A DNA stretch of 61,543 bases, taken from positions 1-61,543 of the forward strand of contig CBFFRQ010000025.1 of NCBI GenBank assembly GCA_965644315.1, in the 5' to 3' direction. Under the pieces are notes generated by a model, which made no database searches, was not told the DNA's origin, and saw only the letters and a list, made by a program, of their open reading frames with translations. Every line of letters starts with the position of its first letter. Within the stretch, counting starts at the first letter, position 1. Positions 16,985 to 34,684 of this stretch are shown one piece after another. The stretch comes from Caecitellus pseudoparvulus (lineage: Eukaryota > Protista > Bigyra: Bicosoecida). The translations under genes and the position numbers were made by a program.

Positions 16985-17236
16985 TCTCGGCTTCACGGTG
17001 GCCCGCGGTGCACTCCAACCATGTGCACTTCCGTCATGGTTGCGATCTTCGCGCGCTCGTTTGTATCCGGCTGGTTCCTTTGCAGCCCTCGGTGCAGGGC
17101 TTCTGTGCCCGTCGTGAATCCCTGCACCAACCAGCACAGGGACATCGCAGGCGGGCTGCAGGCGCCTGGCCCGCCACGAGCACTCCACAAGCGTGTACTC
17201 CCACTGCCGCTCCCTCTCTAACGGCAATCTCAGCAG

Positions 17237-17845
17237 CTACCTGTCCTCAGCCGAGCTGCTTGCCTCTGGCGCACCCTGACTTGCGTCAGTCTTGCGGTAG
17301 GACATGACCGGCACCAGGCCTGTGCCCTTGCTGTACGCATCGTAGGTGTCCATCATCACTAACACAGCGAAGTACGGCGCCATGGCGGTGCCGTTGCCCA
17401 TCACCAGGAACGGCACGTACCCTGCTCCGAACGCCAAGAAAACGTTGCTGATGTCCGAGTCAGCGTTCACGCCGCCCAGGCGCAGGCCAGAGAGGGTGCC
17501 CTGGTAAATTGCGAAGAATCCCGCACACATGGCGATGCGAGACACCATGAGGCGCGGCAGGTTGGGCGGCACAAACTTGCCGCCACCCGCCTTCACCTTG
17601 GCAGCTCCAGTGCGTTGCCCGTAGTAATCCACCAAGCCAGCACCAGCGCCCACGAATCCACCAGCAACCGTGCCAAGTAGGCTGTACTTTCCTACTGCCT
17701 TCAAGTACTCTGGCCAAGTCCGCTCTTCGGGGCTGGGGGAGCTGCCGTCCTCCACTGCCCCTGCGGAATCTGCCTCCTTGCGCCGGCGCCGCACTCGCCT
17801 GGGTGTGTGGCGGTCTACACCCCACTCAGTCTCGTCCATTGGCAT
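17237..17845 (-). CDS. Tim17/Tim22/Tim23 (PRAT)-like membrane protein
   Basis: Gly-rich TM GTVAGGFVGAGAG followed by PRAT-like GFFAIYQG..L..R....D..N..LA.G and further TMs. Confidence 0.6.
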   Translation of the reverse strand: MPMDETEWGVDRHTPRRVRRRRKEADSAGAVEDGSSPSPEERTWPEYLKAVGKYSLLGTVAGGFVGAGAGLVDYYGQRTGAAKVKAGGGKFVPPNLPRLMVSRIAMCAGFFAIYQGTLSGLRLGGVNADSDISNVFLAFGAGYVPFLVMGNGTAMAPYFAVLVMMDTYDAYSKGTGLVPVMSYRKTDASQGAPEASSSAEDR

Positions 17846-18174
17846 GGTGGATTTCACTGGCCGCCAGGAAGTTCACGTGTCAAGGTCTGTGCTGGAGGTT
17901 TACGGTGCGCTTGGACGATCTGGCCGCTCCGTGTTTTGGCGGAATATGGGCGACGGCTCCTTGCAGCACTGTTAAGGCGTCAGGTGCACAGCAAGGCAAG
18001 GGGAACTCTCTTTCAAAACCATGACTTCTAGATATGCGTTGGATTGAGGTTTGAAGTTTGCAAGCTCATGTGCAGGGACACTCGTGGTTGCTGTCGCGCA
18101 AGCGATTTCCGCACACCCTGACAAGCTTTGCGGCGTCTTTGCACGCCTCTAGTGCGAAGATACGCTCAGCAACG

Positions 18175-19045
18175 ATGATGAACACAGCGTGTGCTGCATC
18201 TCGGGCCATCACTCGCCACATGTCAGCTGCAGCAGCCGGTGTTGGCAGCGCTCAGGGTGTGAATGTCGCTGCGGCGCAGCAAGCGCTGCTCAACGCCGAC
18301 CTGGTGGCCTTTGACGTCGACTCGACAGTGCTGAATGGCGAAGGCATTGACGCGCTGGCTGCCTTGGCTGGGAAGGGCGAGGAGGTGGCAGCCTGGACCG
18401 CCAAGTGAGCGATGCAGCTGAGCGGGGTGTGCTGCTGCTGCGCACGGCATTCGTTCACTCTGCCGCCCCCCCCGCAGGGCCATGGAAGGCGGCGTGACCT
18501 TCGAGGAATCCCTGGCTGCTCGTCTGGACATCATCAAGCCGGACGCTGCGTTGCTCGCGGCGTTTCACGAGTCGGACCCGCTGGAGTTGACTCCGGGCGT
18601 GGCCGAGGTGGTGCAAGCCCTGCTCCGTCGCGGCACGGCAGTGTACCTCGTATCAGGGGGCTTCGACGCCATGATCGCGCCCACTGCAGCTCGCCTGGAC
18701 CTGCCAGCATCCCACGTTCTGGCCAACCACATCAAGCTGGACGCCGAAGGAGCCTTCGCAGGGCATGACGAGGAGGCGTTCACTGCGCGGTCAGGAGGCA
18801 AGGCGCGCGCCGTGGCAGCGCTGAAGGAACGCACTGGGGCCACGACGGTGGTCATGGTGGGGGACGGCGCCACGGACATGGAGGCCAGGCCGCCGGCAGA
18901 CGCGTTCATTGGCTACGGGGGCATCGCTGTGCGGCCGGCGGTGCGGGCCGGCGCCGACTGGTTCGTCACCTCGTGGGACCCGGTACTGGAGCTTCTCAGC
19001 GAGAAGCAGGCGGGTGGCACAGCCCCTGCCTCAGCCGAGAGGTAG
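18175..19045 (+). CDS. PSPH: Phosphoserine phosphatase (HAD), possible mitochondrial presequence
   Basis: FDVDSTV, AMEGGVTFEESLAARL, LVSGGF, GGK, MVGDGATD. Intron 18405-18477. N-terminus MMNTACAASRAITRHMS is presequence-like. Confidence 0.92.
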
Positions 19046-19260
19046 TGGGTCGCTTGGCCGGCGCAGAGGTCGATCCAGCGAAATAGCGAACTCACCGGTA
19101 GCAAGGCGTGGGAAGAACGCCACGAATAAAAACCAACAACCACAGCGAACCGCACCCAAGAGGCAGCTTACAGACCACTTCGCTGGTCTACGCTTGTCTC
19201 TGGCGCGGCTCCGAACGGTGCTGCGAAGGGGGTGCCTGGCTCAATTACCGCACGCCAGCC

Positions 19261-19889
19261 ATGAGGAAGCTGAAATTCCATGAGAAGAAGCTGCTGAAGA
19301 AGGTGGACTTCCTGCAGTGGAAATCAGATCGCACAGCAAGGGAATCCGCAGTTCTGAAGCAGTACATGATCCAAGACCGCCAGGACTACGTCAAGTGGGC
19401 ATCGCACCCTCATGTTCCGCAGCCTCGCCTCGCATGCGCTGCACCGCCTCCATGCTCCCCCCTTGTCCTAGGTACAACCGTCTGGCCGGCCAGGTGACGC
19501 AGATGTCCAAGAAGCTTCTAGGCCTGCCCCCCCACAGCCGTGTGCGCATCGAATTGACCGACAAGCTGCTGGACAAGCTGTTTCTCATGGGTGTCATCAA
19601 CAGCAAGCGCAGCCTGGTGGCGGTGGAGAAGTTGACGTCTGCAGCTTTCGCGCGGCGGCGGCTGCCTGTGGTGCTGGTGCGCATGAAGTTTTGCGAGACG
19701 CTGAAGCAGGCGACACAGTTCATTCAGCAGGGGCACATTCGGGTGGGGCCAGAGGTGGTGACAGACCCCGCCTTCTTCGTCACTCGCAGCATGGAGGATT
19801 TCATCACCTGGGTCGACGGCTCCAAGGTCAAGCGCACAGTGGCCAAGTACAACGACAAGCTGGACGACTTCGACCTGCTGGGAGAGTAG
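19261..19889 (+). CDS. IMP3: U3 snoRNP protein Imp3
   Basis: MRKLKFHEKKLLKKVDFLQWK; intron 19395-19471; RRRLPVV..QGHIRVGPEVVTDPAFFVTRSMEDFITWVD..YNDKLDDFDLL. Confidence 0.97.
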
Positions 19890-19895
19890 TGCCCG

Positions 19896-21230
19896 TCACT
19901 TGGCATGCGCTGCCCACAGCTGCCACGCCAGCTGCAGTGCGCAGCGCCGCAGAGCCTGCTGAGTGTGCACAGCTGACAATTTCTCTGCACCAAGCGCCCA
20001 CCGGCCAGCTTTCACTGCAGCATGGGCTTTGGCCACGACTGGGTGTGCGGACCCCACCACGGGGGCAGTTGTCGCCCCGGCACTGCGCAAGGAGTCAAGC
20101 CGGCGTTGCAGGCCAGCGCAGCGCACTTCCAAGGCCGCCACCCGCAGCTGTGCAGTTTCGCGAGCACTGTCAGCGTCCCGAACCTCTGCAGTTGCCTTGT
20201 TCAGGCGGTTTGTCAGGCGCCGCACAGCTTGCTGGAGGCGGTTCATGCGCTCAGCGCTTGCTATGCTGGCGCCTTCGGCACTTGGCGGCGCCCCCGCCAG
20301 CAACGCCGCCCCTGAGGAACCCTGCCGTTGCTTGGGGAGGGATGCGGAGCGCCTGGTGGCCTTGTGCTGGGCAGAGCGTGTTTGTGCCTGCCGCCTCAAT
20401 GCAGCCATTTGCCCTCTCAGGGCTCTGTTGTCCTCCACCAGCCGCTGGGCGCGCTCTTCCGCCTTGCTAGCGCGCTGCGCTGCCGCGGCCTTGGCCTGCC
20501 GCAGCCCTGCCAGCTTCTGCTTGCTGGCGGCGGCATACGCGACAAGTTGCTCCATTTGCTGCTGTTCTGCGTCGATGAGGGCTGCCTGCAGACGCCGCAT
20601 CTCCGCCAGCGCGGCGTCTCGCTCGTCTTGCGCCAATTGCAGGCTCGCGCTGCTGCCGGCCTCTGTGCGCTGCGCCTCTTGCATCCTGGCCTGCACCCTG
20701 GCCTGCACTTCCGCTTCCAGCGTTTCATGCTTCGCACGCAGCAGCTCCTGCGTTTCCTCGCGCAGGGTGTCTAGCTGCTGCATGGCGGCTGCCACCTGGC
20801 CCGCCACCCGAGCCTCCTGCTCAGCCTTGACTGCCTGGTACTCGGCCTCCAGGCGCTGCAGCCGAGCTGTGGCAGCTGCCTCGGCGCGCTTCACCTGTTC
20901 CGAGATGCGGGCAATGGCCTGTGCCTCCACAGTGCCGTGGCCCTCTTGCACGGCGCCCGCCTGCCGTTGTGTGGCAGCTTGCGCGACAGCCTGTATCTCC
21001 TCCGCCACCGCTTCTGTGATTTCCGCCTGCACGCTGCGCAAGCGGGCTGCCTGGTCGGCTATGTGCTGAATCATGTGATCCTGCACCTGGCGTGCCATTT
21101 GCAGGTTGCCCCGCACTGTGGCCGCTGCGCTGCGCTGCATGGAAGCCAACTCCTGCATGTCTTGCAGGACCGGGCTGGGTTGTGGGGCTGCAGGCGGAGC
21201 CCACCCCTCCTGTGGCACCTTCACTGACAT
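19896..21230 (-). CDS. Hypothetical coiled-coil protein
   Basis: Long A/E/Q/R-rich heptad-like ORF. Start (MSVKVPQ at 21230) and C-terminus are uncertain. Confidence 0.6.
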   Translation of the reverse strand: MSVKVPQEGWAPPAAPQPSPVLQDMQELASMQRSAAATVRGNLQMARQVQDHMIQHIADQAARLRSVQAEITEAVAEEIQAVAQAATQRQAGAVQEGHGTVEAQAIARISEQVKRAEAAATARLQRLEAEYQAVKAEQEARVAGQVAAAMQQLDTLREETQELLRAKHETLEAEVQARVQARMQEAQRTEAGSSASLQLAQDERDAALAEMRRLQAALIDAEQQQMEQLVAYAAASKQKLAGLRQAKAAAAQRASKAEERAQRLVEDNRALRGQMAALRRQAQTRSAQHKATRRSASLPKQRQGSSGAALLAGAPPSAEGASIASAERMNRLQQAVRRLTNRLNKATAEVRDADSARETAQLRVAALEVRCAGLQRRLDSLRSAGATTAPVVGSAHPVVAKAHAAVKAGRWALGAEKLSAVHTQQALRRCALQLAWQLWAAHAK

Positions 21231-21613
21231 GCCAGGTGGTGGAGATGGCGGTCCAGTCGTGGTGGGTGGTGTGGGAGGTGCCTGCGGTGTGGAGGGGGGC
21301 TGCAAGGCAGCTTTCGCGCGTTTCCTCCGCGTTTCATGTGTCCACGCCCCCCTCCGAACCGGGTCTCCAAGCTCCAGACGGCGGCAGCGTGGGTTCGACA
21401 TGGCAGTGTGTTCAACAGGATATCATGAACATGCCAAGGGGGTGAAGGTAGCGTCTCGTCTCGTCGGCAACTCCTTGAAGGAGCAGTGTAGTGGCTTGTG
21501 CAAGCTGCCGTTGCACTGGCAACAAACTGTGCAGCGCGAGAATACAAATGTACATTCAATGGGGGGGACAGCCACAGCATAAACGGGCGTGTGACTTCAA
21601 TTGACTTGGCCCG

Positions 21614-24600
21614 TCAAATGCTGACGCTGCAAAGCATGTGCTTGGGGTTCGCGCCGTTGCTGGGCCACCGGCGGCGGGGCGGAGCGTCGGGGTCAGCGAG
21701 CATGCGCTGCACCCGCTCGGCAGCCGCACGCCCACGAGGAGTGCCCTCCTCCAGCGGCACCGGTGCCGTCTCTGCCAGTGCGTTGGCGGCGTCTGTGGCC
21801 GTGGCCAGGTCCTCCAGGCGCTGCTGGAAGCGGCCCCAGATGTCGGATGCTTCCTGCCACCGTGCATCGCGGAGGAAGACATGGGAGAAGTCCTCCATCA
21901 GGCGTGGCTGCTTGAAGCCCGTGACCATGGCGATGGACAGCAGCTGGAAGTGCGCGTGCACGTCGGCGATGTTGTACCCAGGCCTCATGCGGGCTGTGGC
22001 CCAGGTGGGGTTGGACACATACGCCGTCACCCGCCCCACGTGCAGGTGGTACGCCGTGACCAGGACGATGTTGGTGGCCAGGATGCGGGCAGCCTGCTCC
22101 CGCGTCTCGGCAGTGGGGAAGTGCCCCTTGTCGTGCACCCGCAGCTCCGTGATGAAGGCCTGCCACTGCCTGTCTTGCTGCAAGGCCGTGTCGTTGGCAT
22201 AGTACAGGTGCATGTACTCCACCACCATGTCGGTGACGATGTCCTCAAAGGCCGCCATGTCCTGGCCGAAGGGGTACAGGTGCCCCGGCACATCGGCCAT
22301 GCCCTGGGCCTGCAGTCGCTCCGAGATGGGCTTGTAGCTGGACCGTTCGAAGGTGGCGCTGAAGGCGGACTTGAGGCCGTTCCAGGTGAGGGCGGTGGCG
22401 CGGTGGAGGAAGCCGTTCTTGGAGAGCAGGGTGGAGATGGCGCCGTGGTTGATGGTGACGGTTTGGAAGGTGTGGATGCCGAGCAGGCGTCGGAGGGGGT
22501 GGTCAGCACCCAGCTGCTCACGCGTGGCCATGGCGAGGTTGTTGGCCACCATGAGGTGTGTCTCAGTCAAGTGGTTCCCTGCCGTGATGCCCACGAGTGC
22601 AGAGGACCTCCACACGAAGGAGGCGTGGATCCACAGGTCCTGCGGGCCGTCAGGCGGCACCCACCGCGGGTTGCCAGAGTTGGGCCACAGCAAGCCCAGC
22701 GTGTGCCCCGTCGCGTTGAAGAAGGCAGCTGCGCCGAACTCAGCCGTGTTGGGGCGCACCTCCAGCGCTGTCATCCACGTGAAGTCGTTCACGAACTCCA
22801 CCTGCTGCAGCACGGGGTGCTCCTCCCCCAGCAGGCCTCGCAGTGCCGCCATGACATCCTCCGCGGCGGGCGACGTGGCCCTGGCCAGGTTGTGGGCTGC
22901 CAGGTCCGCGAAGGAGATGCGGGCGATGTCTTCGGGCCGCGTCATGTCGGTCCAGGGCGTCAGGGGTGGCGGCAGGCGCGTCATGCCCCGGGTGGCCAGC
23001 TGCGTGATGACGTAGCCGTCGTGGGCAGACGCGAACGGGTCGCTGCTGTCATCCATGGGGTACATGAGGGGTTGGCGCAGGAGGGCCAGGACGATGTTCT
23101 CGATCCACTTGCCGGAGATGCCACCGGGGTGCTCCTCGTCCTCCACTGGCAGGGGCAGGGCGAAGACGTTGCGCTCCTTCTTCAGGGGGCGGAACCAGGT
23201 CGTGGGCACGACAGCGTGTGGGTCGTCGCTGCCTTCCTGCTTGTCCAGGCCCATGGTCAGCATGCCGTACAGGATGCGGGCATGCCGGGAGGTGCCGGAG
23301 GTGTACGCCACCTGGGCTTGGGCACACAGCGTCGCCAGCGCAATGTGGGACTGCGGGATGCCCAGCTTCGTCGCGTTCAGGACCTGGAAGACACCCGGGT
23401 CCGCCAGGTTGAAGTTGCACAGCTGGATGTCGGAGAGAGTGGAGAGGCCGAATGTGGCGGCCATGAGCACCAGCGCCAGCACCACCATGCCGCTGAGGAT
23501 GAAGCCGTACTGCCCCTGCCCCGAGCACTTGCCCCGCAGGAGCTTGCTGCAGCCGTCCATCCAGCCCACGCAGCCCTGCCCAGCCGACTTGTCAGGGGCA
23601 CTGGGGGACGCCGCCCCCTCCGAGTCGCCCGGTAGCTCGTCCTCGCCGTTGTCCACAGGAAAGGCATCCTGCTGTGCCTCCTTGGCAGTTGCGCGGGCGT
23701 ACAGCATGGCGCGGATGAGCTTGGGGTCTCGCCCCGCCAGGCGCTGCGTGGTGGTGTCCATGATGGGGAAGGCCCACAAGGCCATGGGCAGGTGGACGCA
23801 GCCCAGGAACAGCCCCGTGAAGAAGGGGAACAGTGTCGGCACAAACAGCCACACGAGAATGACGAGGGTGACACAGGCGTATGCCGAGAGGGTGGTGCAG
23901 GCCAGCGCCCGGCCCATGTCCGAGACGGGGAAGTTGGTCAGCAGCTTGTACAGGATGTGGTCGGGCTGCACCCCGGCAGCCACGGTGCGGAAATGGTGCC
24001 CGTCCCACGCGTGCTCCTGGGTCAGGCGCGTGATGGTGTACAGGTACAGCGCCACGGCCGGCACGGCGACGACGCAGGACATGTTGTGGAAGGGGAAATC
24101 GTTGGACACGTTCATGTACAAGCCGAAGGCGACGATGTTCAGGAACACCACCGACGCCCACACGACGATGGTGGGGCCGGCGGGGGGGGCTCGGTCCACG
24201 GGGCATCGCTCTGGCTTTACCATCTCCGCGATGGCGCTGTCCAGCTGGGTGCTGCCAAAGAGCGGGATGATGGAGCCGTTCCAGTGCACATCCATGAGGT
24301 GCAGCTCCTCGTCCACGCCCATTGTGGACGGTTCGATCTTGGGCGGGTAGCGAGACGGCGGGGCGCCCCTGACACCTGACCCCATCAAGAGCCGCATGAG
24401 TGCAGCCTCCGACTGCAGGTTGGATGCGCGCAAGGGCTCTGCAGAGCCCATCGTGTGCCTCCGAGGGCGTCCGCGGGGCGTGGCTGGCGGCGTGGCAGCG
24501 CGCTGAAAGTCCTCCTCATCCTCGCCGTCTCCTGGCACAGCCATGGACCCGGCAGACCCTGCGTGCACAAGCCTGACGCATTGGCGGGTGCTGGTCCCGG

Positions 24601-27353
24601 AATCGAACCTTTGTAAGTTGCCGGGGGGCACCGCCACCGTCACCTGCCTCCGGCGCACCATGGGCGACGCCACCAACCGCTGCACATCATCGGCGAAGCT
24701 GCCCACAGGCACGGCCAGCGGGTTGGCACTGGCGTCCGTGTCCAGCCTTCCCCCTACACTGTGCCGCCGCGCAGGACGGTGCCCACGCAAGAGCTCATCA
24801 TCATCAGCAGAACTGTAGACATGCGTCTCGACATGTTCCTCCTCGTCACTGGAGTCTGAGCTCGATGCCCGCGCGGTGTCCAGCACGGGCACAGCCGGCC
24901 GTGGAGTGGGGGCTTCGAGCAAGGCGGAGCTGTGCCTGGTGGTGGAGGTAGTGGCACCACTGCTCATGGGCATGTGGTGATCCCGCAGTGTGTCGAACGT
25001 TTGACGGTGGCCGTGAGAGTCTGACCCTGTTCGAAGGGGGGCCACGGCGTTGGGAGGGGCGCTGGGCAGGACGGAGTCGTCGGTCCTCGTCAAGCGCTCA
25101 CTGTCTGCCGTGTACGTGGGGGTGGTGGCGGAGCCCAGGCTGGACACCTGTCGCGCCGTGGCGTGCATGTCAGGGGGCACGACACTGCCGGCACGTTTGG
25201 CGGCCTCCACCTCCGCGAGGCCCCCCACATCCGACACCCGCACGAAGGTAGATATACTGGCCATAATGGCGGAGGACGCCCGCATGAAGATGGCGTGCAG
25301 GCGCCGCGTCTCCTCCCAGTGTGCAGTGGCCTGCAGCCACAACACGAAAATGGCACCGGAACTGCTGATAGTACCGACACACTGCAGGAAGGGCAGGCGC
25401 AGGTACCAGCCTAGGCCGTACAGCACTTGGAACATCAGGAAGCACATGATGTGCATGGAGTACTCGCCCACTTTGCACCTGGCTTTCACCAGCGTTGCCA
25501 CGGTGCCCGCCATCGCCATGCACAGCCAGGTCGTCATGCCCAGGGTGTTGTACAGGCCGTCCCCAGAGATCATGGCGATGTCGCCGTCATCAGCAGCGCT
25601 GGCTTGTTGCAGCAGCCGAGTGCGCTGCTGCACCAGGGACGGCTTGGGGGGCAGGAAGCCCTCCACCACTCGCTGGGCAATGGACAGGGACAGGCGGCGG
25701 GCAGGGCAGGCGCGCGGCGCAACGGTCCAGTCCACAAAGCCATGCTTATCCCAGGCCCACTGCGGCCCTCCAAAGGCCAGGGAGTGCCGGATGTCAGCAC
25801 GGCTTGGGTCGAATTGCCGGGCACGGGCGGTGGAGGAGGCGTGCCCGCCGAACACGGACGGGTCTTGGTTGGCAGCGGAGATGAAGTACTGAACCGTCTT
25901 GCCAGGGGGGATGGTGGCGGGGTTATCGGGGAAACGGGCCGTGGCCACCTTCTGCTCCGTCTGCAGGATGTTCGTGAAACTGCCGATGGGTGGGTCCAGC
26001 CGAGCCGTCTCCAACAAGAACGCCTGCGGGTTCTCCGCCCACATGCCCAAGAAACGCTTGGGGTCTGCACGCACCCGGCGCAGGGTGGAGCGGACGAGGG
26101 ACACGATGGACAGCATGCCAGTGAACAAGAACGTGTCCGTCATGCGCTTGTGGGTGTCCACGATTTCCTTGGCCAGGCGACTGGATCCCGCCGGCAGGTG
26201 AGGGAACATGCGCGTCACCGTGTCCTGCACGCGCGAGCCGACAGGAGTCAGCATGACACTGTCCCGGATCTTCTTTCGCAGCTGCTTGACGTCGCCGGAG
26301 AAGAGGCCCGAGGCGTGCTGGTCCAGGGGCTGCCCCAGCCACACCACCACTTCGAATTCCCTGTACTGCATGCACCAGCGCACTTCCGTCTCGTTGAGGG
26401 TCCCATTGAACATGGCAGAGAAGAGGGTGCCTGCTACGGTGCGGGCGACGGCCAAGTCTACGTCGTCGTCCCATGCCTCGTCCCAGCCGTCGTCACTGGC
26501 CTTGGCGGCACGCATGGCACCGGAGGCGGTCTCCCGCGCGCCCGCTGGCACCACCAGCGGCACATCCACCGCATGGCGCGGGTCAAAGGCGGGGGACAGC
26601 TGCATCATCAGCCTCCGCAGGTCGGCATGTTCCTTCCCTGAGCTCAGCATGCGCAGGCCACCCGGTTCGATGACGTCCTTGCTGACTGGGAGGCCGCCCA
26701 GGAACGGACCTCGGGCCTGCGGACTTTGCAGCGCTGCCAACACTTGAGAATGCCGGCCGTGTGCGAGCTGTGCAGGGGGCGTGGCGGGGAAGAGCCGGTG
26801 TAGGCAGGGTGGCAGATGCCTCAGAAGGGCCATGTGGCGTGTGGAAATGCAAGTGAAGTTGGCGCACCTGCGCCCCGCCAGCGAGCAGCTGGCAGGGCGC
26901 CATCGCACAGCGACGTGGCACGGCACGCACGCCATCAAGCCAGAGGGCTTCGTCCCCCTGCACTTTGTGCACACGCCCGATGAGCGTGGCAATGTCCCAG
27001 TTCTCTACAATGAACAGGGGCAGTGTCAAGGCGACGTTGGCAAAGAGGTGCCCCACGCCCGCCAAAGAGGGCGCGCCCATAATGGCTACATCAGCCAGCC
27101 CTTTCCTGGCGAAAGAGTCCACCGACAACAGGAATTCCCTCCCCTCCTCCATCAGGAACAGCGTGCTCACCGCCGAAAGCACCGCCACGGAGAGGAGAAT
27201 GCATGTCCCAAGGGCAAACTGCACTCGCATGGCGAAGGCATGCCCCGCATTCATAGCCACTTCATCTTGAGCAGCGCTGCTGCTAGCGGCGGCACGCTCT
27301 TCCCGCTCAGCACCAGGTGCAGCAGGTTGCCCTCTGGCGCGCTGGGTGGCCAT
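21614..27353 (-). CDS. Atypical (CYP74-like) cytochrome P450 + multi-pass membrane domain + lipoxygenase fusion protein (~1,860 aa)
   Basis: Exon 1 (27353 to ~26931) has an N-terminal TM; exon 2 (26767-21614) is uninterrupted. P450 motifs: ETARLDPP (ExxR), ANQDPSVF, FDPSR, F..RACPA with the Cys at 25706-25708. About 8 further TMs. LOX motifs: HLTETH, HPLRRLLGIH....IN, TAYH, C-terminal SVSI. Confidence 0.85.
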
Positions 27354-27989
27354 GGCGGGTGTGGGTGGCCGACCACGGGACCCTGAACAACATGGGAAGC
27401 ATGCGGGACGTCTCTGCATTGGCGACGGGTGGCGTTTTTGGCGCGCGGCAGCGATTGCGGATGCTCTGCCTCCTTCGGCTCCGTGCCACGCTCCAACGCG
27501 GCCTGCTCCTCCCCCCACTCTCATGCATTGCACTGCACGGCACCCCGCGTGCCTGTTGCAAGCAACCCAGCCCAAGAGGGGGCCCTTTTGGCGCAAGCAA
27601 CGCCATGCTTTGGGTGTCCTGGTCGGAATGTCGCCGGAACTTGCGCCCGGCTCATCAACGCTGCTGCCACATCCCGCCCGCGCTCTCTGCACGCGGGCCA
27701 AGCAAAGGCTCGGGCCTTGCGCCTCTGCAGGCTGCCCACGGCACGGAAGGGGGGGTCCAGGGGCCGGAAGACGGCGAATCCCGCCGTGCGATGCATTGCC
27801 CGTGCCCGGACAACGCCTGGTACCCCGTGTCTACCGCCCCAAAACCAGCGCTGCTGCTGCTGCTGCTTCCCTCGAATCGCCAGCGCTACGCCGGGCAGCT
27901 TCATGCAGCTGCAAGCACCGGCGCCGGGCAGGTTGCAGCGGCGCGCCTGAAAGGAGGGACAGCCTCCGCCCCCAGCTTAGGAACGTGAT

Positions 27990-28435
27990 GGCATTTTGCC
28001 CCACTTTCGTGCTGGAGGTAGCGCCACCAGCCCGGGGTCATGCTGTGTGGGGGGCAGAGGCACAGGCGAGCCAACCTTCACCAACGGGCTGTGGTTGCAC
28101 TTCACTTTCGAAGCCCCGTGCGTGGGGGCAAATCGGAGGGCAGGAAGTATGCAATACAGCCCATGGGGTTTGACACGCAGCATTCTGTCGCGGTTGGGGT
28201 GACCCGTTTGTGCCACGCGAGGGCTCGTCCGAGGAACTTGCTTGGCAACAGCTCGGCAGGTTGCCACCGGTTCACGGTGCCGAAGGGTAGCGCACCCCAG
28301 CAGGGCGCAGGCCCCTCCGCGGGGCTGACAGTGGTTCCCTTCGCGGCCTTTAGCCCGAGGTCATTTGCACTGTTTGTGGGCAAAGGGTGGTCGTGGTAGC
28401 TTCGCAACTTCAGCGAGCAGGCTGTGCCTCTGGCG
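27990..28435 (+). ncRNA. Candidate structured non-coding RNA of unknown class
   Basis: Closing helix CAGAGGCACAG (~28036) / CTGTGCCTCTG (~28422). A ~100-nt G-U-containing hairpin at 28073-28170 and several further hairpins. Lies in an unusually long ORF-poor intergenic gap. Confidence 0.35.
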
Positions 28436-28777
28436 CTGGACGAAGATATGCCAGGCCTAGAAACACCGTGGATAGCGATGGAGTACCCTAATAATGCCTG
28501 CAAAACGCAGCCAGGGACTCAGCTGCCGCACATGTTGCCTCGGGCTGTGTGCGATGAAAGCCAGACACGTGTGGCCACGCGACCCCCCCTCCAGCTTTAC
28601 AAGGCACAGGCCAAGCACTCAGACTGGTGCAGCAAATAAATACTTACTTGAAAATAGAACTCAAACTCCCTTCTATTGGACTGCGCCTGTTTTCTGGGTT
28701 TTGGGCCAGGGTGCGCTTGGCGTGCTGCGGAATTTGGTCCGCCACGTTGGCTTCAGCAACTGGTGGCCTCACGCAAG

Positions 28778-30582
28778 ATGCTGGACCACTTTTCCGTGTT
28801 CAACCGCCATGGAGTGGTGCTTTGGAGTGAAGATCTCTCTGAAACCCCTGTCACGGGAAAGCCCGTGGACGACCTGGTGCGGCACGTGTTGCTGGAGGAG
28901 CGCGCAGCGCAAGAGCACACAGTGGGAAACTACATGCTCAAGTGGACCCTGGTGAACGGGCTGGACCTGGTCTTCGTCGTCGTCTTCAACCGCATCATCG
29001 GCAAGACCCTCACGTACATTGACGAGCTCTTGGCCTCTGTGCAATCGGTGTGTCGCGGCATGCCACTGCTGACACGGCCCGGGCTGCAGCGACAGCCTGC
29101 TGTACCTCACAGGCGTTTTTGGAAGAGCACAAGGAGGCCATCGCGATGGGGTCTGGAAAGGGCGTGGATTTCCATGACACCTTCCACGCGCTGTGGGCCA
29201 AGGCGGAAGGCAGGAAACCCTCCCCCCTCGCGCCGCCCCCCAGCAAAGCACACCCCGCTGACCCAGCTGCGTCTGAGGACACAGAGACAGCACCGAAGGT
29301 AGTGGCACCCCCAGCAGTGCCCTTGACACCCGAGGAGCGCAAGGCACGGCTGCAGGCCATGAAGGGCTCCTCCAGGCGGGGAGGCAAGGGCGGTGCAGGG
29401 GCGGGGTCGAGCGGCTCCAAGAAGGGCAAGGGCCCCAAGAAGCCCCGAAAGTGGGCTGACTCTGCCCTCACTGCGGAGGAAGTGCAGGCTCTGGATGCTG
29501 CCGCTGGCGCTGCAGGCGGCAGCGGCGGGCAGGCAGCCGTGGAGGAAGTGTCGTACTCTGGTGACGGCACCGGCTCTGACGTGAGCAAGGAGTGGGACGT
29601 CGGGGCGGCGCATGCAGAGGAGACGGGGTGGTGGACCTCTGTCACCGCCACCTCGGCGTCCTGGCTGGGGTCCCTCACTGGCAGCACCCCCCTGACCCAG
29701 GAAGCCATCGCGCCCGCCATGGACACCCTCCGCGAGCACTTGCTGGAGAAGAACGTGGCGCGAGACATTGCGCAGGAGCTGTGCGACTCGGTGGCCACCT
29801 CCCTCGTGGGCGTCGTACCGGGGACGTTCACCAGCGTCCCCGCCCTCGTGCGGGATGCGCTGGGCGCTGCCATCCGCCGCAAGCTCACAGCGCGCTCCTC
29901 CATCGACGTTCTGGCCGCCGCCAACGCCAAGGCAGCCACTGGCGGTGCCTCGGCGGCGCCCTACACCATCGTCTTCATCGGCGTGAACGGCGTGGGCAAG
30001 AGCACCAGCCTGGCCAAGGTCGTGTACTACCTGAAGGACAACGGCAAGCAGGTGCTCATCGCCGCGTGTGACACCTTCCGAGCAGGAGCCGTGGAGCAGC
30101 TGAAGCGGCACGCCAAAGCCCTGAAGGTGCCGCTTTTCGAGCGGGGCTACGAGAAGGACAGCGCGGCGGTGGCTGCTGCGGCTGTGAAGCACGGAGCGGA
30201 GACCGGCCACGACGTGGTGGTGGTGGACACTGCTGGGCGCATGCAGAACAACGACAAGCTCATGGTGGAGCTGGCTGCCCTGGTAGACAGGGTGCAGCCT
30301 GACCTCGTGCTGTTTGTGGGCGAGGCGCTGGTGGGCAACGACGGCGTGGACCAGCTGCAGGCGTTTCACCGTGCGCTGCAAGACCACAGCCGTTCTGCAA
30401 CGCCACGCGGCATTGACGGCATCGTGTTGACCAAGTTCGACACCATCGACGACAAGGTGGGCGCCAGTCTGTCCATGGTGTACCGCACGGGCGTGCCAGT
30501 GGTCTTCGTCGGCACAGGGCAGAAGCACACCAACCTGCGCAAGCTCAACGTGGACGCTGTGGTGGAGGCGCTGCTGGCATAA
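28778..30582 (+). CDS. SRPRA: Signal recognition particle receptor alpha subunit
   Basis: SRX start MLDHFSVFNRHGVVLW; intron 29048-29112; GVNGVGKSTSLAK, DTFRAGAVEQL, DTAGRMQ, TKFDTIDDKVG, GTGQ. Confidence 0.97.
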
Positions 30583-30647
30583 GGGGACACAATGCAAATG
30601 CCTCCGTCAACCCCGCCAACTAGCCAGGAGCTGCACTGCCGCACGCC

Positions 30648-32459
30648 ATGTCTCTCGTGCCACTTGTGCTCTTCGTGGCGCCGCTGCGTGAGGCGGCGCC
30701 ATGGCTGCTGGACACGGCTGCTGTCGCTGCTGCTCTGCAGGTGCGTCCGTTGCAGCACCATTTCGCCGTGGAGCAGCGCGTGGGGCCGGCGTGCACTGCG
30801 CAGGAGCTGCATCACGCAGTGTTTGCACCACACACGCTGTCTTCTCGCAGGAACAACACTTGCAAGAGCGTGTGGAGCTGGAGCGGGACATCGAGAGCAA
30901 GCCTGTGAGGGCCGAGGCGCACCGCCAAAGTCCGCAGGGGTGCCTTCCACACACAGTGCTGGCGCCCTTTCGCAGCTTGAGCCCCAACTAAGCCCCCAAC
31001 TGCAGAACATGATGGCACAGGAGGAGGAGGCGGGGCGTTCGGGCGCCTCCTATGCTTCCCTGCGCGGCCAACTCACGTCAAGGGTGGACGCTCAAGTGAG
31101 ATTGACACGCCACCCTGTCCACTGCTGTCCGGGCCACGCCGCCCCACCGCTGTGCCGCAGATCGACGCCGAGTGCCAGGCAGCCATGGACTACATTCTAG
31201 ACGTGCACATGAGCCAGCGCAAGTCCGTGCTGTCCAAGCAGAGCAAGCAGCGGGCCAGCCTTGCCAAGGCTGTAACAGCAGCCATCAAAACCCATCTTGG
31301 GCCCGCTGCTTTGTCCAAAGAGCCGCTGCCAGCCCCCACCGCAGAGCCGCCAAGCAGCTTGCCCCCCCTGTCACCGACATCCCATAGAAGCCATGCCAGC
31401 ACCCTGCCTGTTCCGGGCTACGCGCCACCCGCTGTTGGCAGTGCAGCCACTGTTGCAGACGTTGCCGTGCTGCAGCGTGAAGAAGCAGCACAGGTGTGGA
31501 CACACCGGGAGCGCTACACCATCCAGGCCGCCTTCACGAACCAGCTGGCCCGCATCGAAGCTGAGTGGAAGGAGTACCTCGTGTCCATGCACTCTGAGTG
31601 GGAGGATGAGTACAAGGCCATCACAGGCCACGCGCCTGACCAGGCCGCCGTGGCCGCCACTGGTGTGGACGTGCAGGCGTTGAAATCTGGCTCAGGTGAC
31701 CCCCCCAAGAGCTGGCTGGACAAGGCCAAGCAGGAGCAACTCATCCACACGGCCCCTGTCATCATGCCCTCGGGCGCAGGCGCCATGCGCCGTGGAGCCG
31801 CCCCCTCGGCGCCCACCGCCCCCTCCACCTCCCTCAGCGCCACTGCAAAGCGGCAGGTGGCAGAGCTGGCCACCAAGTACGCAAACGCCCGCGCCAGCGT
31901 CAAGGCCCAGCAGGCGGAAGTGGCACGGTGGGTGCAGCGCCAGTGCCGCCGCATGCTCATGCAGGTGGACGGGGCGGGGCAGGAGCGTGCTGCCGTGGCG
32001 GCGGCGGAGGCCAAGCTCGCGGCCTCCTGGGCCGACGTGGCCACGCTGCTGTACAATGCGGCAGTGACTGTCAGCCGCTCCAGTGGCACGCCGCTGCAGT
32101 ACGCCTCCACCACGGACACCGTGGCGTACCTGCGGGAGTGGGGCGGGCTGGGGCCTGAGCCACTGGCCACACCGCCCACACCAGCCCCTGCAACCTCCAC
32201 ACCAGTCCCCGCTGCCTCGCCACCCCCCACCCGCTCGCCTGCACGAGCAACCCCAGGCAGCGCCTCACGCTCCCGTCAGAAGGGCTCCCCAGCCGCCACA
32301 AGCTTCAGAGTGTCCCCAGTCACGACGCCAGGCAGCCGCAGAGCTGGTGGCATGCCTTCCTCAGCTGGCAGCGGCAGCGGCAGTGGTCTGCGGGGCAGCC
32401 GGCGAGGAGTGGCAGGGGTGGCCATGCCCATGGCGCGGCGGGCAGGCGGCAAGCGGTGA
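30648..32459 (+). CDS. Hypothetical multi-exon coiled-coil / low-complexity protein
   Basis: Main exon 31161-32459, with upstream pieces linked by plausible GT-AG introns (30741-30850, ~30905-31006, 31096-31160). The 5' exon structure is uncertain. Confidence 0.55.
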
Positions 32460-32513
32460 GCGTGGGCCGGCGTCTGCCTGCGTGTGACGCCAATGTACTG
32501 TGTTCATTTGCAG

Positions 32514-34684
32514 CTACTTCTTGCTGCTGGCGCCACCCAGCACAGGACGACCGTCGGCGCCCCACGGCGCAGCCAAGCCGCCCTTGCCACTGGCACCCAG
32601 GCTGCGCAGGCGAGAGGAGCCCCCCATTGCAGGCAGGTGGTGCGGGGCCTTCGCAGCGCCCAGGGAGAAGCCCTGTGCCCGTCCGGGGCTGAGGGCGGAC
32701 CCCGCACCCCCCCCTCCAGCAGCTGCCGAGGGAGTGGGCTCGCTGTCCTTGCCCTCTGCATCAGGCTCGGGGACCTCTGCCACCTTGCTCTCCTCTGCAG
32801 CGGGGGCGGGGGACGGCGCTGGTGCTGGGGCGTCCTCAGAGGCCTTGCCCTCTGCACCTGCCTCCGCCTGCGCCTTGGCCGGGCTGGCAGCGGCAGTCGC
32901 AGCGGCCGCTTCAGCCGCCTCAGCGGCAGCTCGCTTGCGCGCAGCGGCGCGGATTTCGTCCCCCACCGACCCGTGGCCCACCTGAGCCCTGAAAGCGTCC
33001 TCCTTCACAGCTGCGACCGTGCCCCACCCAACGCCCGGCACACCCTTGCGGCGGCCTTCCCACACGGACAGGCGCTTGGGCATGGGCAGGTCCTTGCGAG
33101 TGGCGTACTCTGCCTCGGCGTACTGCTTCACCTGCACGCCACGGCAGCGCGCAGTGACGTCGGGGAAGGCGACGTCCAGCAGTGGCTGGTCGTCCTTGGT
33201 GTCGGCCAGGACGCAGTACAGACTGCCGCCGAACCAGACGCAGTGCAGGACGATGCCGACGGAGGTGTACTGCTTGGAGGCGATGACCTCCACGTGTTCC
33301 ATCTCAGGTGGCACTTCGAAGGCCAGCTCGAAGAAGGAGGAGCTCCAGTCCTCGTTCAGCCAGCCGGTAAGGCCCAGCTGGCTCAGCTTCTCCAGCTCCT
33401 CCTCCACGCTGAGCATCTCGGCAGTGAGGAACTCCAGGCTGGCCTTGTACGCCGCCAGGACCGCTGCGTTGGGGGAGTCTGACGGGAACTTGCTGATTTC
33501 ACACAGGTATGCCAAGTTGCCCTGCTGCTTCTGCAGGGTGGGCAGGACGTCCGGGACGTCCCCCAGGTGCAGCCCCTCCACGCCGAAATCCACCTCGCCA
33601 CCGTAGCACCAGTTGCCGAAACGGAAGAGGGCGTCCCGTCTTGTGCTGCCGCTGTCCAGGTGCTTGGGCTTCATCACACAGTACACCTGCATGTACCCTT
33701 CCCCAGCCAGGTCTTCTGTGCCCGTCGCCCGCCTGCCGTCACCCGCTGCTGCTGTCTGCCCGGGGGCGCGGCCGAACGCTGGGTCAGGCACCTGCTCACT
33801 GGCCTCCCACAGCGACAGCTTGCTGAACACGGGGTGGTCGTATGCACGTAGCTGTGAGGGGTGCGCGGAAGGCGGGGTGAGCCAGGCCCATTGCGAAGTG
33901 AGCCACAGCGAGGCTCAACAGAAGCGGAGCAGGCAGCCCACACGTCGCACATGATATGATCGGGCCAAGGCTACACTGTGCACGGGCAACGCGCACGCAC
34001 CTGCAGTCCACGGCGCTTGCCGTAAATCTGCGGAAACATCGTGTCCACCAACGCCTGCTCTCCTGACGAAGACGGAGACAGCGTCACGTAGAACGTGGAG
34101 CGGTACCAGATGACAGTGAGCATGATGTCTCCTGTGAATGTCTTGGCAAACACCACCTCCGCATTCTGCGTTCCAGGAGGGTCGTGGCGAGCAGCGTGAG
34201 CTTAGTGCGCTGCTGGCGTTTCGTGAGTGGCAGCAGCGCCAGCAAGCCGCAACGGCAGCGCCCCTGCACGGAGCACTCCACGCACGTTGAGGGTGTAGGA
34301 CGCCCGGGACTCAAACTCAAAGTACAAGTTCACGTCCTCCTCTGCGATCCAGGTCTCTGTCTCCAAGTACTCTGCCAGCACTTCTTCCACAGAGCCCAGC
34401 TCCTCCTTGATGAAGTCCAGCGCCTCGTTGAGGGTCGCCAGGGACTTGCTGTGGGGACTGTGCTTGGGGATGGCATCAAACTCCGTGAAGTACGGGATGG
34501 TGCCCTGAATGCTCTGCAGGTACCGCATCACAGACGGCAAGTGCTCCATGCTGGGCACGCCAGTGGCAAGCTCCACTGGGCCCGTGTAGCAGAACCTGCC
34601 ATATCGGTACAGGCACGTGGGGCTGGTGAAGCGGGAACCAGAGGCCCCAGCCTGAGGCTTGTACACGAAGTACACTTGGTCCAT
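32514..34684 (-). CDS. Hypothetical protein with two tandem copies of an unrecognised ~230-aa domain
   Basis: Three ORF pieces join in frame through introns 34166-34285 and 33852-34000. The two halves align (QVY.V.KP, L(Y/F)R(Y/F)G..CY.G.V, LQ..QG...Y..E...P..SP, SVEE.L, D..FP....RG.Q, LS.WE). Confidence 0.75.

Follow-up and report, generated by a model that had tools for sequence, protein, structure and literature searches.

Positions 21,614 to 27,353 of the window, by which we mean the whole 61,543-nucleotide stretch of Caecitellus pseudoparvulus DNA under analysis (contig CBFFRQ010000025.1, assembly GCA_965644315.1), carry on the minus strand a gene predicted to encode a cytochrome P450, a seven-transmembrane (7TM) bundle with an eighth helix, and a lipoxygenase (LOX) in a single chain. 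The protein is probably intact and belongs, in that reading, to a conserved family of protist oxylipin synthases that are membrane-bound and act in two steps. Oxylipins of marine protists have roles in grazing defense and signaling, and to our knowledge the hydroperoxide-transforming enzymes of most marine protist lineages are not known. The 7TM-bridged family offers a concrete, expressible candidate for such enzymes in at least four lineages.

The first-pass annotation of this DNA had described one stop-free exon of 5.15 kb. That exon holds (26767-21614, minus strand, 1,717 codons), and the gene model is now extended by a 5' exon, so that the features read as follows:

26931 to 27353, minus strand: exon 1, starting at 27353 or 27254, with a hydrophobic anchor or signal (27218-27150) and the initial part of the P450 fold.
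26768 to 26930, minus strand: putative intron, 163 nt, GT..AG, phase 0, placed from splice sites and frame.
25643 to 26767, minus strand: divergent cytochrome P450 domain, with I-helix FTGMLSI at 26125-26105, ExxR (ETAR) at 26011-26000, and heme Cys at 25708-25706 (RAC) after a lengthened loop.
25328 to 25555, minus strand: 7TM bundle helices 1 to 3 (family alignment; hhalign E 0.003; homolog model).
24220 to 25249, minus strand: insertion in loop 3-4, about 340-385 amino acids, rich in Ser, Ala, Arg, and Pro, predicted cytosolic, with RRxS/T motifs at 24769 and 24463.
23756 to 24172, minus strand: 7TM bundle helices 4 to 7 (hmmsearch E 1e-8; hhalign E 3e-4; conservation).
23444 to 23509, minus strand: helix 8, outside the bundle, predicted to bring the chain back to the exoplasmic side (homolog model and loop 7-8 charge).
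23318 to 23422, minus strand: stalk in which two Cys, probably forming a disulfide, are conserved (26/26 and 26/28 rows).
21614 to 23287, minus strand: lipoxygenase domain, with HLTETH at 22573-22556, the third His (TAYH) at 22048, and Ile as the last residue ahead of the stop codon at 21614.

The minus-strand reading frame 26992-21614 runs for 1,792 codons without a stop; its first 75 codons are mostly intron, and the stop-free length of exon 2 would arise by chance with a probability of ~1e-18 at this base composition. Exon 1 has weak similarity (E 0.005-0.009) to the N-terminal anchors of the intronless homologs P0009 and P0019, and the intron flanks are collinear with an intronless paralog on contig C53 of the same genome. 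We infer splicing and a single transcript, which would give a product of 1,825 or 1,858 amino acids from the starts at 27254 and 27353, respectively. The gene is one frame kept by purifying selection over all of its domains and the linker. Compared with a second strain (metagenome contig L001), the exons, linker included, hold 52 synonymous and 6 nonsynonymous differences, with divergence of ~1% in exons, 4.3% in the intron, and 7.1% in the 3' flank. All 6 differences in exon 1 are synonymous, and synonymous changes outnumber nonsynonymous ones in the P450 domain (11 to 1), the loop 3-4 insertion (6 to 2), and the LOX domain (17 to 2).

The P450 and LOX motifs named in the first-pass annotation are every one present. 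For the LOX half, the Pfam profile PF00305 matches at E 2.6e-11 (43 bits against a cutoff of 23.6), PDB lipoxygenases are matched down to E 7e-14, and the three His ligands are kept in 157 to 159 of 160 related domains, the C-terminal Ile being kept as well. The companion match to PF00067, which the annotation had anticipated, was not obtained: Pfam finds no P450 in the N-terminal part of the window protein, and its P450 identity comes instead from PDB sequences, the ESM Atlas, and a family profile. The best PDB sequence match is CYP164A2 (E 4e-4), p450 clusters of the Atlas are matched at 0.97, and a profile built from 20 family P450s matched 16 PDB sequences, all 16 of them P450s (best E 5e-8). 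Single-sequence fold prediction of the window P450 reached a predicted local distance difference test (pLDDT) score of 38. Pfam detects a P450 in 4 of 20 family members, and because it misses the domain in most of them the family is annotated merely as "lipoxygenase."

Searches with the LOX domain and with a profile recovered no fewer than 24 distinct proteins, 1,130 to 1,900 amino acids long, that share the order P450, membrane module, LOX. Among them are proteins of Amorphochlora amoebiformis, Rhodomonas abbreviata (an MMETSP transcript), and Sulcionema specki (a 3,684-nt transcript), and three further members occupy transcript-sized contigs whole; the family thereby reaches chlorarachniophytes, cryptophytes, and diplonemids, at least four lineages in all. 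In a midpoint-rooted FastTree phylogeny of 137 LOX domains, every member with the membrane module falls in one clade (support 0.999); the oomycete fusion P0007 lies outside it, as does another group, in which the fusion is direct. An insensitive search of prokaryotic genomes found no close relative. Only two LOX genes are detectable in the C. pseudoparvulus genome, both of them 7TM-bridged fusions. The second is the intronless paralog (G000:C53:281274-285863; L006:2775-7364, minus strand), a single frame of 1,530 codons with the same architecture and a P450 closer to the family type (Cys pair kept, WNG heme loop).

The family P450s lack the I-helix acid-alcohol pair: the acid position is Leu or Phe in 22 of 26 members (Leu in the window copy), and the Thr position is Gly in 21 of 26 (Ser in the window copy). 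The spacing from W/F to Cys is 16 in 20 of 26 members, that is, the canonical 7 plus 9, and the heme loop of the window copy exceeds the canonical length by 15 residues, or the family length by 6. A 9-residue insertion in this loop is a hallmark of CYP74 (PMC10813956). The likeness to CYP74 suggested in the first-pass annotation stands; it had not remarked on the GPCR/CREST-type fold of the membrane domain, on the predicted exoplasmic placement of both enzymes, or on the missing CYP74 catalytic Asn, to all of which we return below.

Each of the eight hydrophobic segments in the window protein has its counterpart among the family's eight helices in the alignment, in line with the earlier count of about eight transmembrane helices between P450 and LOX in one chain. 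The membrane module matched nothing in Pfam, PDB sequences, or Atlas features, no family of G-protein-coupled receptors (GPCRs) included. In the homolog P0014, a 30-sequence model of the module (pLDDT 84, >90 in the bundle) has seven packed helices plus the eighth, and its top 50 structural matches are all GPCR- or CREST-type 7TM folds (~190-209 residues, Z 10.4-13.7). The best is ACER3 (Z 13.7, root-mean-square deviation [rmsd] 4.1, 196 aligned), with GPCRs at Z 10-12 and rmsd at 4-5 overall; Foldseek agrees on the 7TM fold at a weak E of 0.02. As modeled in P0014, then, the module is a GPCR/CREST-type 7TM bundle with an eighth helix. This is a statement about fold and not about function, because helical bundles can reach a Z near 13 through arrangement alone, a caution that comes with the tool. 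CREST hydrolases have a conserved Zn-binding His triad. No His column of the family alignment reaches 30% in the membrane module, and a CREST hydrolase site was excluded on that ground.

Over 19 members, Lys plus Arg make up 12, 13, 16, and 20% of loops 1-2, 3-4, 5-6, and 7-8 and 9, 2, and 2% of loops 2-3, 4-5, and 6-7, with 8% in the P450 flank and 7% in the LOX flank, and every large loop expansion lies in a basic loop. By the positive-inside rule, this bias would put both enzymes in the lumen or outside the cell, with the bundle oriented as GPCRs usually are. Conserved Cys pairs in the family P450 (both Cys are gone in the window copy) and in the stalk are consistent with this predicted exoplasmic placement.

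The fold and its predicted orientation invite a further reading, which would extend the synthase reading and not displace it: the bundle may be a working receptor or sensor that binds the oxylipin made by its attached enzymes or gates them, with cytosolic loops that contact G proteins or kinases. All 50 top structural matches are of this fold, and the nearest Atlas shapes include the 7TM sensor domains of signaling proteins and an oomycete 7TM-kinase. The expanded loops with their RRxS/T motifs, intramembrane Gln, Tyr, Asp, and Pro conserved in the family, two G-alpha genes in the genome, and the existence of oomycete GPCR-enzyme fusions (PMC6033456) point the same way. However, fold is not function, the Z values are within the range of helical bundles and the Foldseek score is weak, the sequence matches no GPCR family (mean identity 20%), the window copy has lost polar residues of helix 7, and the cytosolic tail goes back into the membrane. 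We therefore hold a receptor role to be rather unlikely. The bolder version, a receptor-enzyme cassette in which a protein of 7TM receptor fold would bear on its outside both enzymes, and with them the whole pathway, for making the lipid mediator that it perceives, is a speculative possibility of similar weight. Oxylipin synthesis and perception would then share one polypeptide; if true, the design would be conserved across several eukaryotic supergroups.

In the preferred reading of the protein as an oxylipin synthase, the chain would run from an N-terminal anchor through the P450, the 7TM bundle, the eighth helix, and the Cys-paired stalk to the LOX, with both catalytic domains on the lumenal or extracellular face, as suggested by the charge bias. 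The non-heme-iron LOX, judging from its conserved ligands, would oxygenate a polyunsaturated fatty acid with O2 to a hydroperoxide, which the tethered P450 would take as both substrate and oxygen donor, in the fashion of CYP74 and without a reductase. Hydroperoxide use is proposed because the P450 has no acid-alcohol pair and would have no access to a cytosolic NADPH reductase. The product may be an epoxyalcohol, an allene oxide, or a cleavage product, among which the sequence cannot discriminate. The bundle would serve at least as a membrane scaffold for the pair, and it may present lipid. This relay from LOX to P450, already put forward in the first-pass annotation, is in our judgment the best candidate mechanism.

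Several observations weigh against the synthase reading. The fourth side-chain iron ligand of LOX is Asn, His, or Ser at the Asn694 site. The equivalent site is Gly in the window copy and in 155 of 160 LOX domains of the protist/oomycete group, which makes the Gly, as far as these alignments go, a trait of the LOX clade. Glycosylation sequons are not enriched (33 against 26 and 49 against 44 expected, not significant), which leaves charge bias and Cys pairs as the support for the predicted topology. The I-helix Asn of CYP74 (Asn321 of Arabidopsis AOS, allene oxide synthase) is absent, its place taken by Ala in 20 of 26 members and by Thr in the window copy, and the family profile scores bacterial P450s (E 5e-8) above plant AOS (E 0.0024). 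The sequence by itself does not assign the domain to the CYP74 clan, and firm membership was rejected. Fungal AOS and thromboxane synthase, however, function without the distal Asn (PMC13049297). The extended heme loop is also found in BcmD and is thus not exclusive to CYP74. The window copy itself departs from the family in the Ser at the Thr position, the lost P450 Cys pair, the additional 6 residues of heme loop, and the loss of the family Arg and Asp in helix 7, and two family members, P0041 and P0053, lack the heme Cys.

These departures bear on the proposal that the window P450 is a decayed or noncatalytic appendage, in which case the protein would effectively be a membrane-anchored LOX and the paralog would perform the full chemistry. 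The window copy is among the more divergent members, and its nearest clade contains P0012 and P0013 (L010:3001-9381; 2,126 amino acids, nearest to the paralog), in which the P450 is strongly degenerate while the membrane module and LOX are kept. Yet the window P450 keeps its heme Cys, ExxR, and meander and has a single nonsynonymous difference between strains, and we consider decay improbable. A separate proposal gives the P450 conventional monooxygenase chemistry driven by a reductase, or peroxygenase hydroxylation of a second substrate, and has the fusion merely co-locate the two enzymes on the cytosolic face of the endoplasmic reticulum. The best PDB matches are bacterial monooxygenases, the window copy has Ser where the Thr would stand, and the residue after that site is a conserved Thr in 19 of 26 members. 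This proposal would have to accommodate the family-wide loss of the acid residue and a charge bias that sets the domain off the cytosol; moreover, sequence inspection finds no basic-proline hinge past the anchor, and a Pfam search of the window protein finds no reductase domain in the chain. We regard it as quite improbable. An NCBI model (P0002, Symbiodinium sp. KB8 assembly) spanning the second half only might point to two neighboring genes that share a frame or to an artifact of assembly, but both can be set aside as very improbable, because three independent ENA metagenome contigs carry the same uninterrupted chain, the 7TM bundle straddles the supposed junction, and homologous transcripts encode the entire chain.

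The same model (CAE7253517.1), a near-identical half of the window protein, was deposited as "Alox5" of Symbiodinium, which suggests that the KB8 assembly includes DNA of the window's organism. P0006, a 612-amino-acid LOX inside the 7TM clade that has only helix 8 and the Cys stalk ahead of it, may be an anchored LOX in its own right or may come from a truncated transcript. Seven further proteins (P0072 [L011:5001-8615, GCA_905250025.1], P0155, P0136, P0113, P0121, P0082, and P0120) have a family-related P450 fused directly to LOX, with no 7TM bundle. The CAJNO accession series is probably that of bdelloid rotifers, which would place a direct P450-LOX fusion in an animal. The fusion gene is neighbored by genes for signal recognition particle (SRP) receptor alpha, an ABC-G transporter, and Arg-tRNA synthetase; the neighbors of the homologs vary, and no pathway cluster was seen among the adjoining genes. 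An Rfam scan of window positions 17000-33000 gave no match, including the interval 27990-28435 between the fusion and SRP receptor genes (E 0.1). The 18S rRNA of the genome (1,697 nt) lies at L018 (G000:C81:462535-464231).

Part of the novelty claimed by the first-pass annotation stands. We found no description of a 7TM-bridged P450-LOX, or of any such chain with a polytopic membrane bridge, in literature searches, in which CYP5619 was the sole related architecture. Single chains of P450 and LOX, however, are already catalogued as CYP5619, under a mistaken label. The Saprolegnia protein SDRG_14277 (P0008) matches both PF00067 and PF00305; Bamal et al. 2018 (PMC5919972) list it as CYP5619B2. 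The text of that and another study calls the CYP5619 fusion partner a heme peroxidase/dioxygenase (PMC4486971, PMC5919972), whereas the supplementary domain table of the former gives the C-terminal domain as "Lipoxygenase superfamily" (PMC5919972). By their domain matches, the oomycete CYP5619 "heme dioxygenase" fusions (P0008 and P0007) are P450-LOX proteins. Like them and CYP5851-5853, the window family has an N-terminal P450 with a degenerate heme motif, a C-terminal LOX that falls, with theirs, in one broad LOX group whose fourth-ligand site is Gly, and no reductase domain. Unlike it, the oomycete proteins lack the 7TM bundle and the anchor, and their LOX belongs to another clade. The CYP5619 P450 is also of a different family, with no similarity by pairwise BLAST and 22% by profile; membership in CYP5619 was rejected since P450 identity does not exceed 40% and the 7TM bundle and helix 8 stand between P450 and LOX. 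CYP5619 and the 7TM-bridged family belong to different clades, and the layout of the latter is undescribed as far as our literature searches reach.

Like the CYP74 clan (AOS, hydroperoxide lyase, divinyl ether synthase, and epoxyalcohol synthase), the family has no acid-alcohol pair, carries Gly in place of the Thr in most members, and has the 9-residue heme-loop insertion and a LOX partner; unlike CYP74, it lacks the I-helix Asn, is no nearer in sequence to AOS than to bacterial P450s, is covalently fused to its LOX, and is predicted to be exoplasmic. Oomycete GPCR-bigrams likewise join a protist 7TM domain to a catalytic domain, which is mostly C-terminal and cytosolic, with no P450 or LOX type described (PMC6033456), whereas the window family has enzymes on both sides of its bundle, both predicted to be noncytosolic. 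The CREST 7TM lipid hydrolases (ACER3, AdipoR, and SIDT) provide the best structural match but differ in their Zn hydrolase site, which the family, having no conserved His column, does not share. If the synthase reading is true, a P450 that works on the noncytosolic face and whose link to LOX is a receptor-like 7TM bundle would bring a new layout to P450 and LOX biology alike. Coral and cyanobacterial catalase-AOS-LOX and fungal dioxygenase-P450 fusions (Ppo, CYP6001-6005) also combine a dioxygenase with a hydroperoxide-transforming heme enzyme in one chain (PMC13049297, PMC10813956), but with other domain pairs, in soluble form, and with no membrane bundle. Among such fusions of dioxygenases with hydroperoxide enzymes, the 7TM-bridged form is a new variant, real and conserved.

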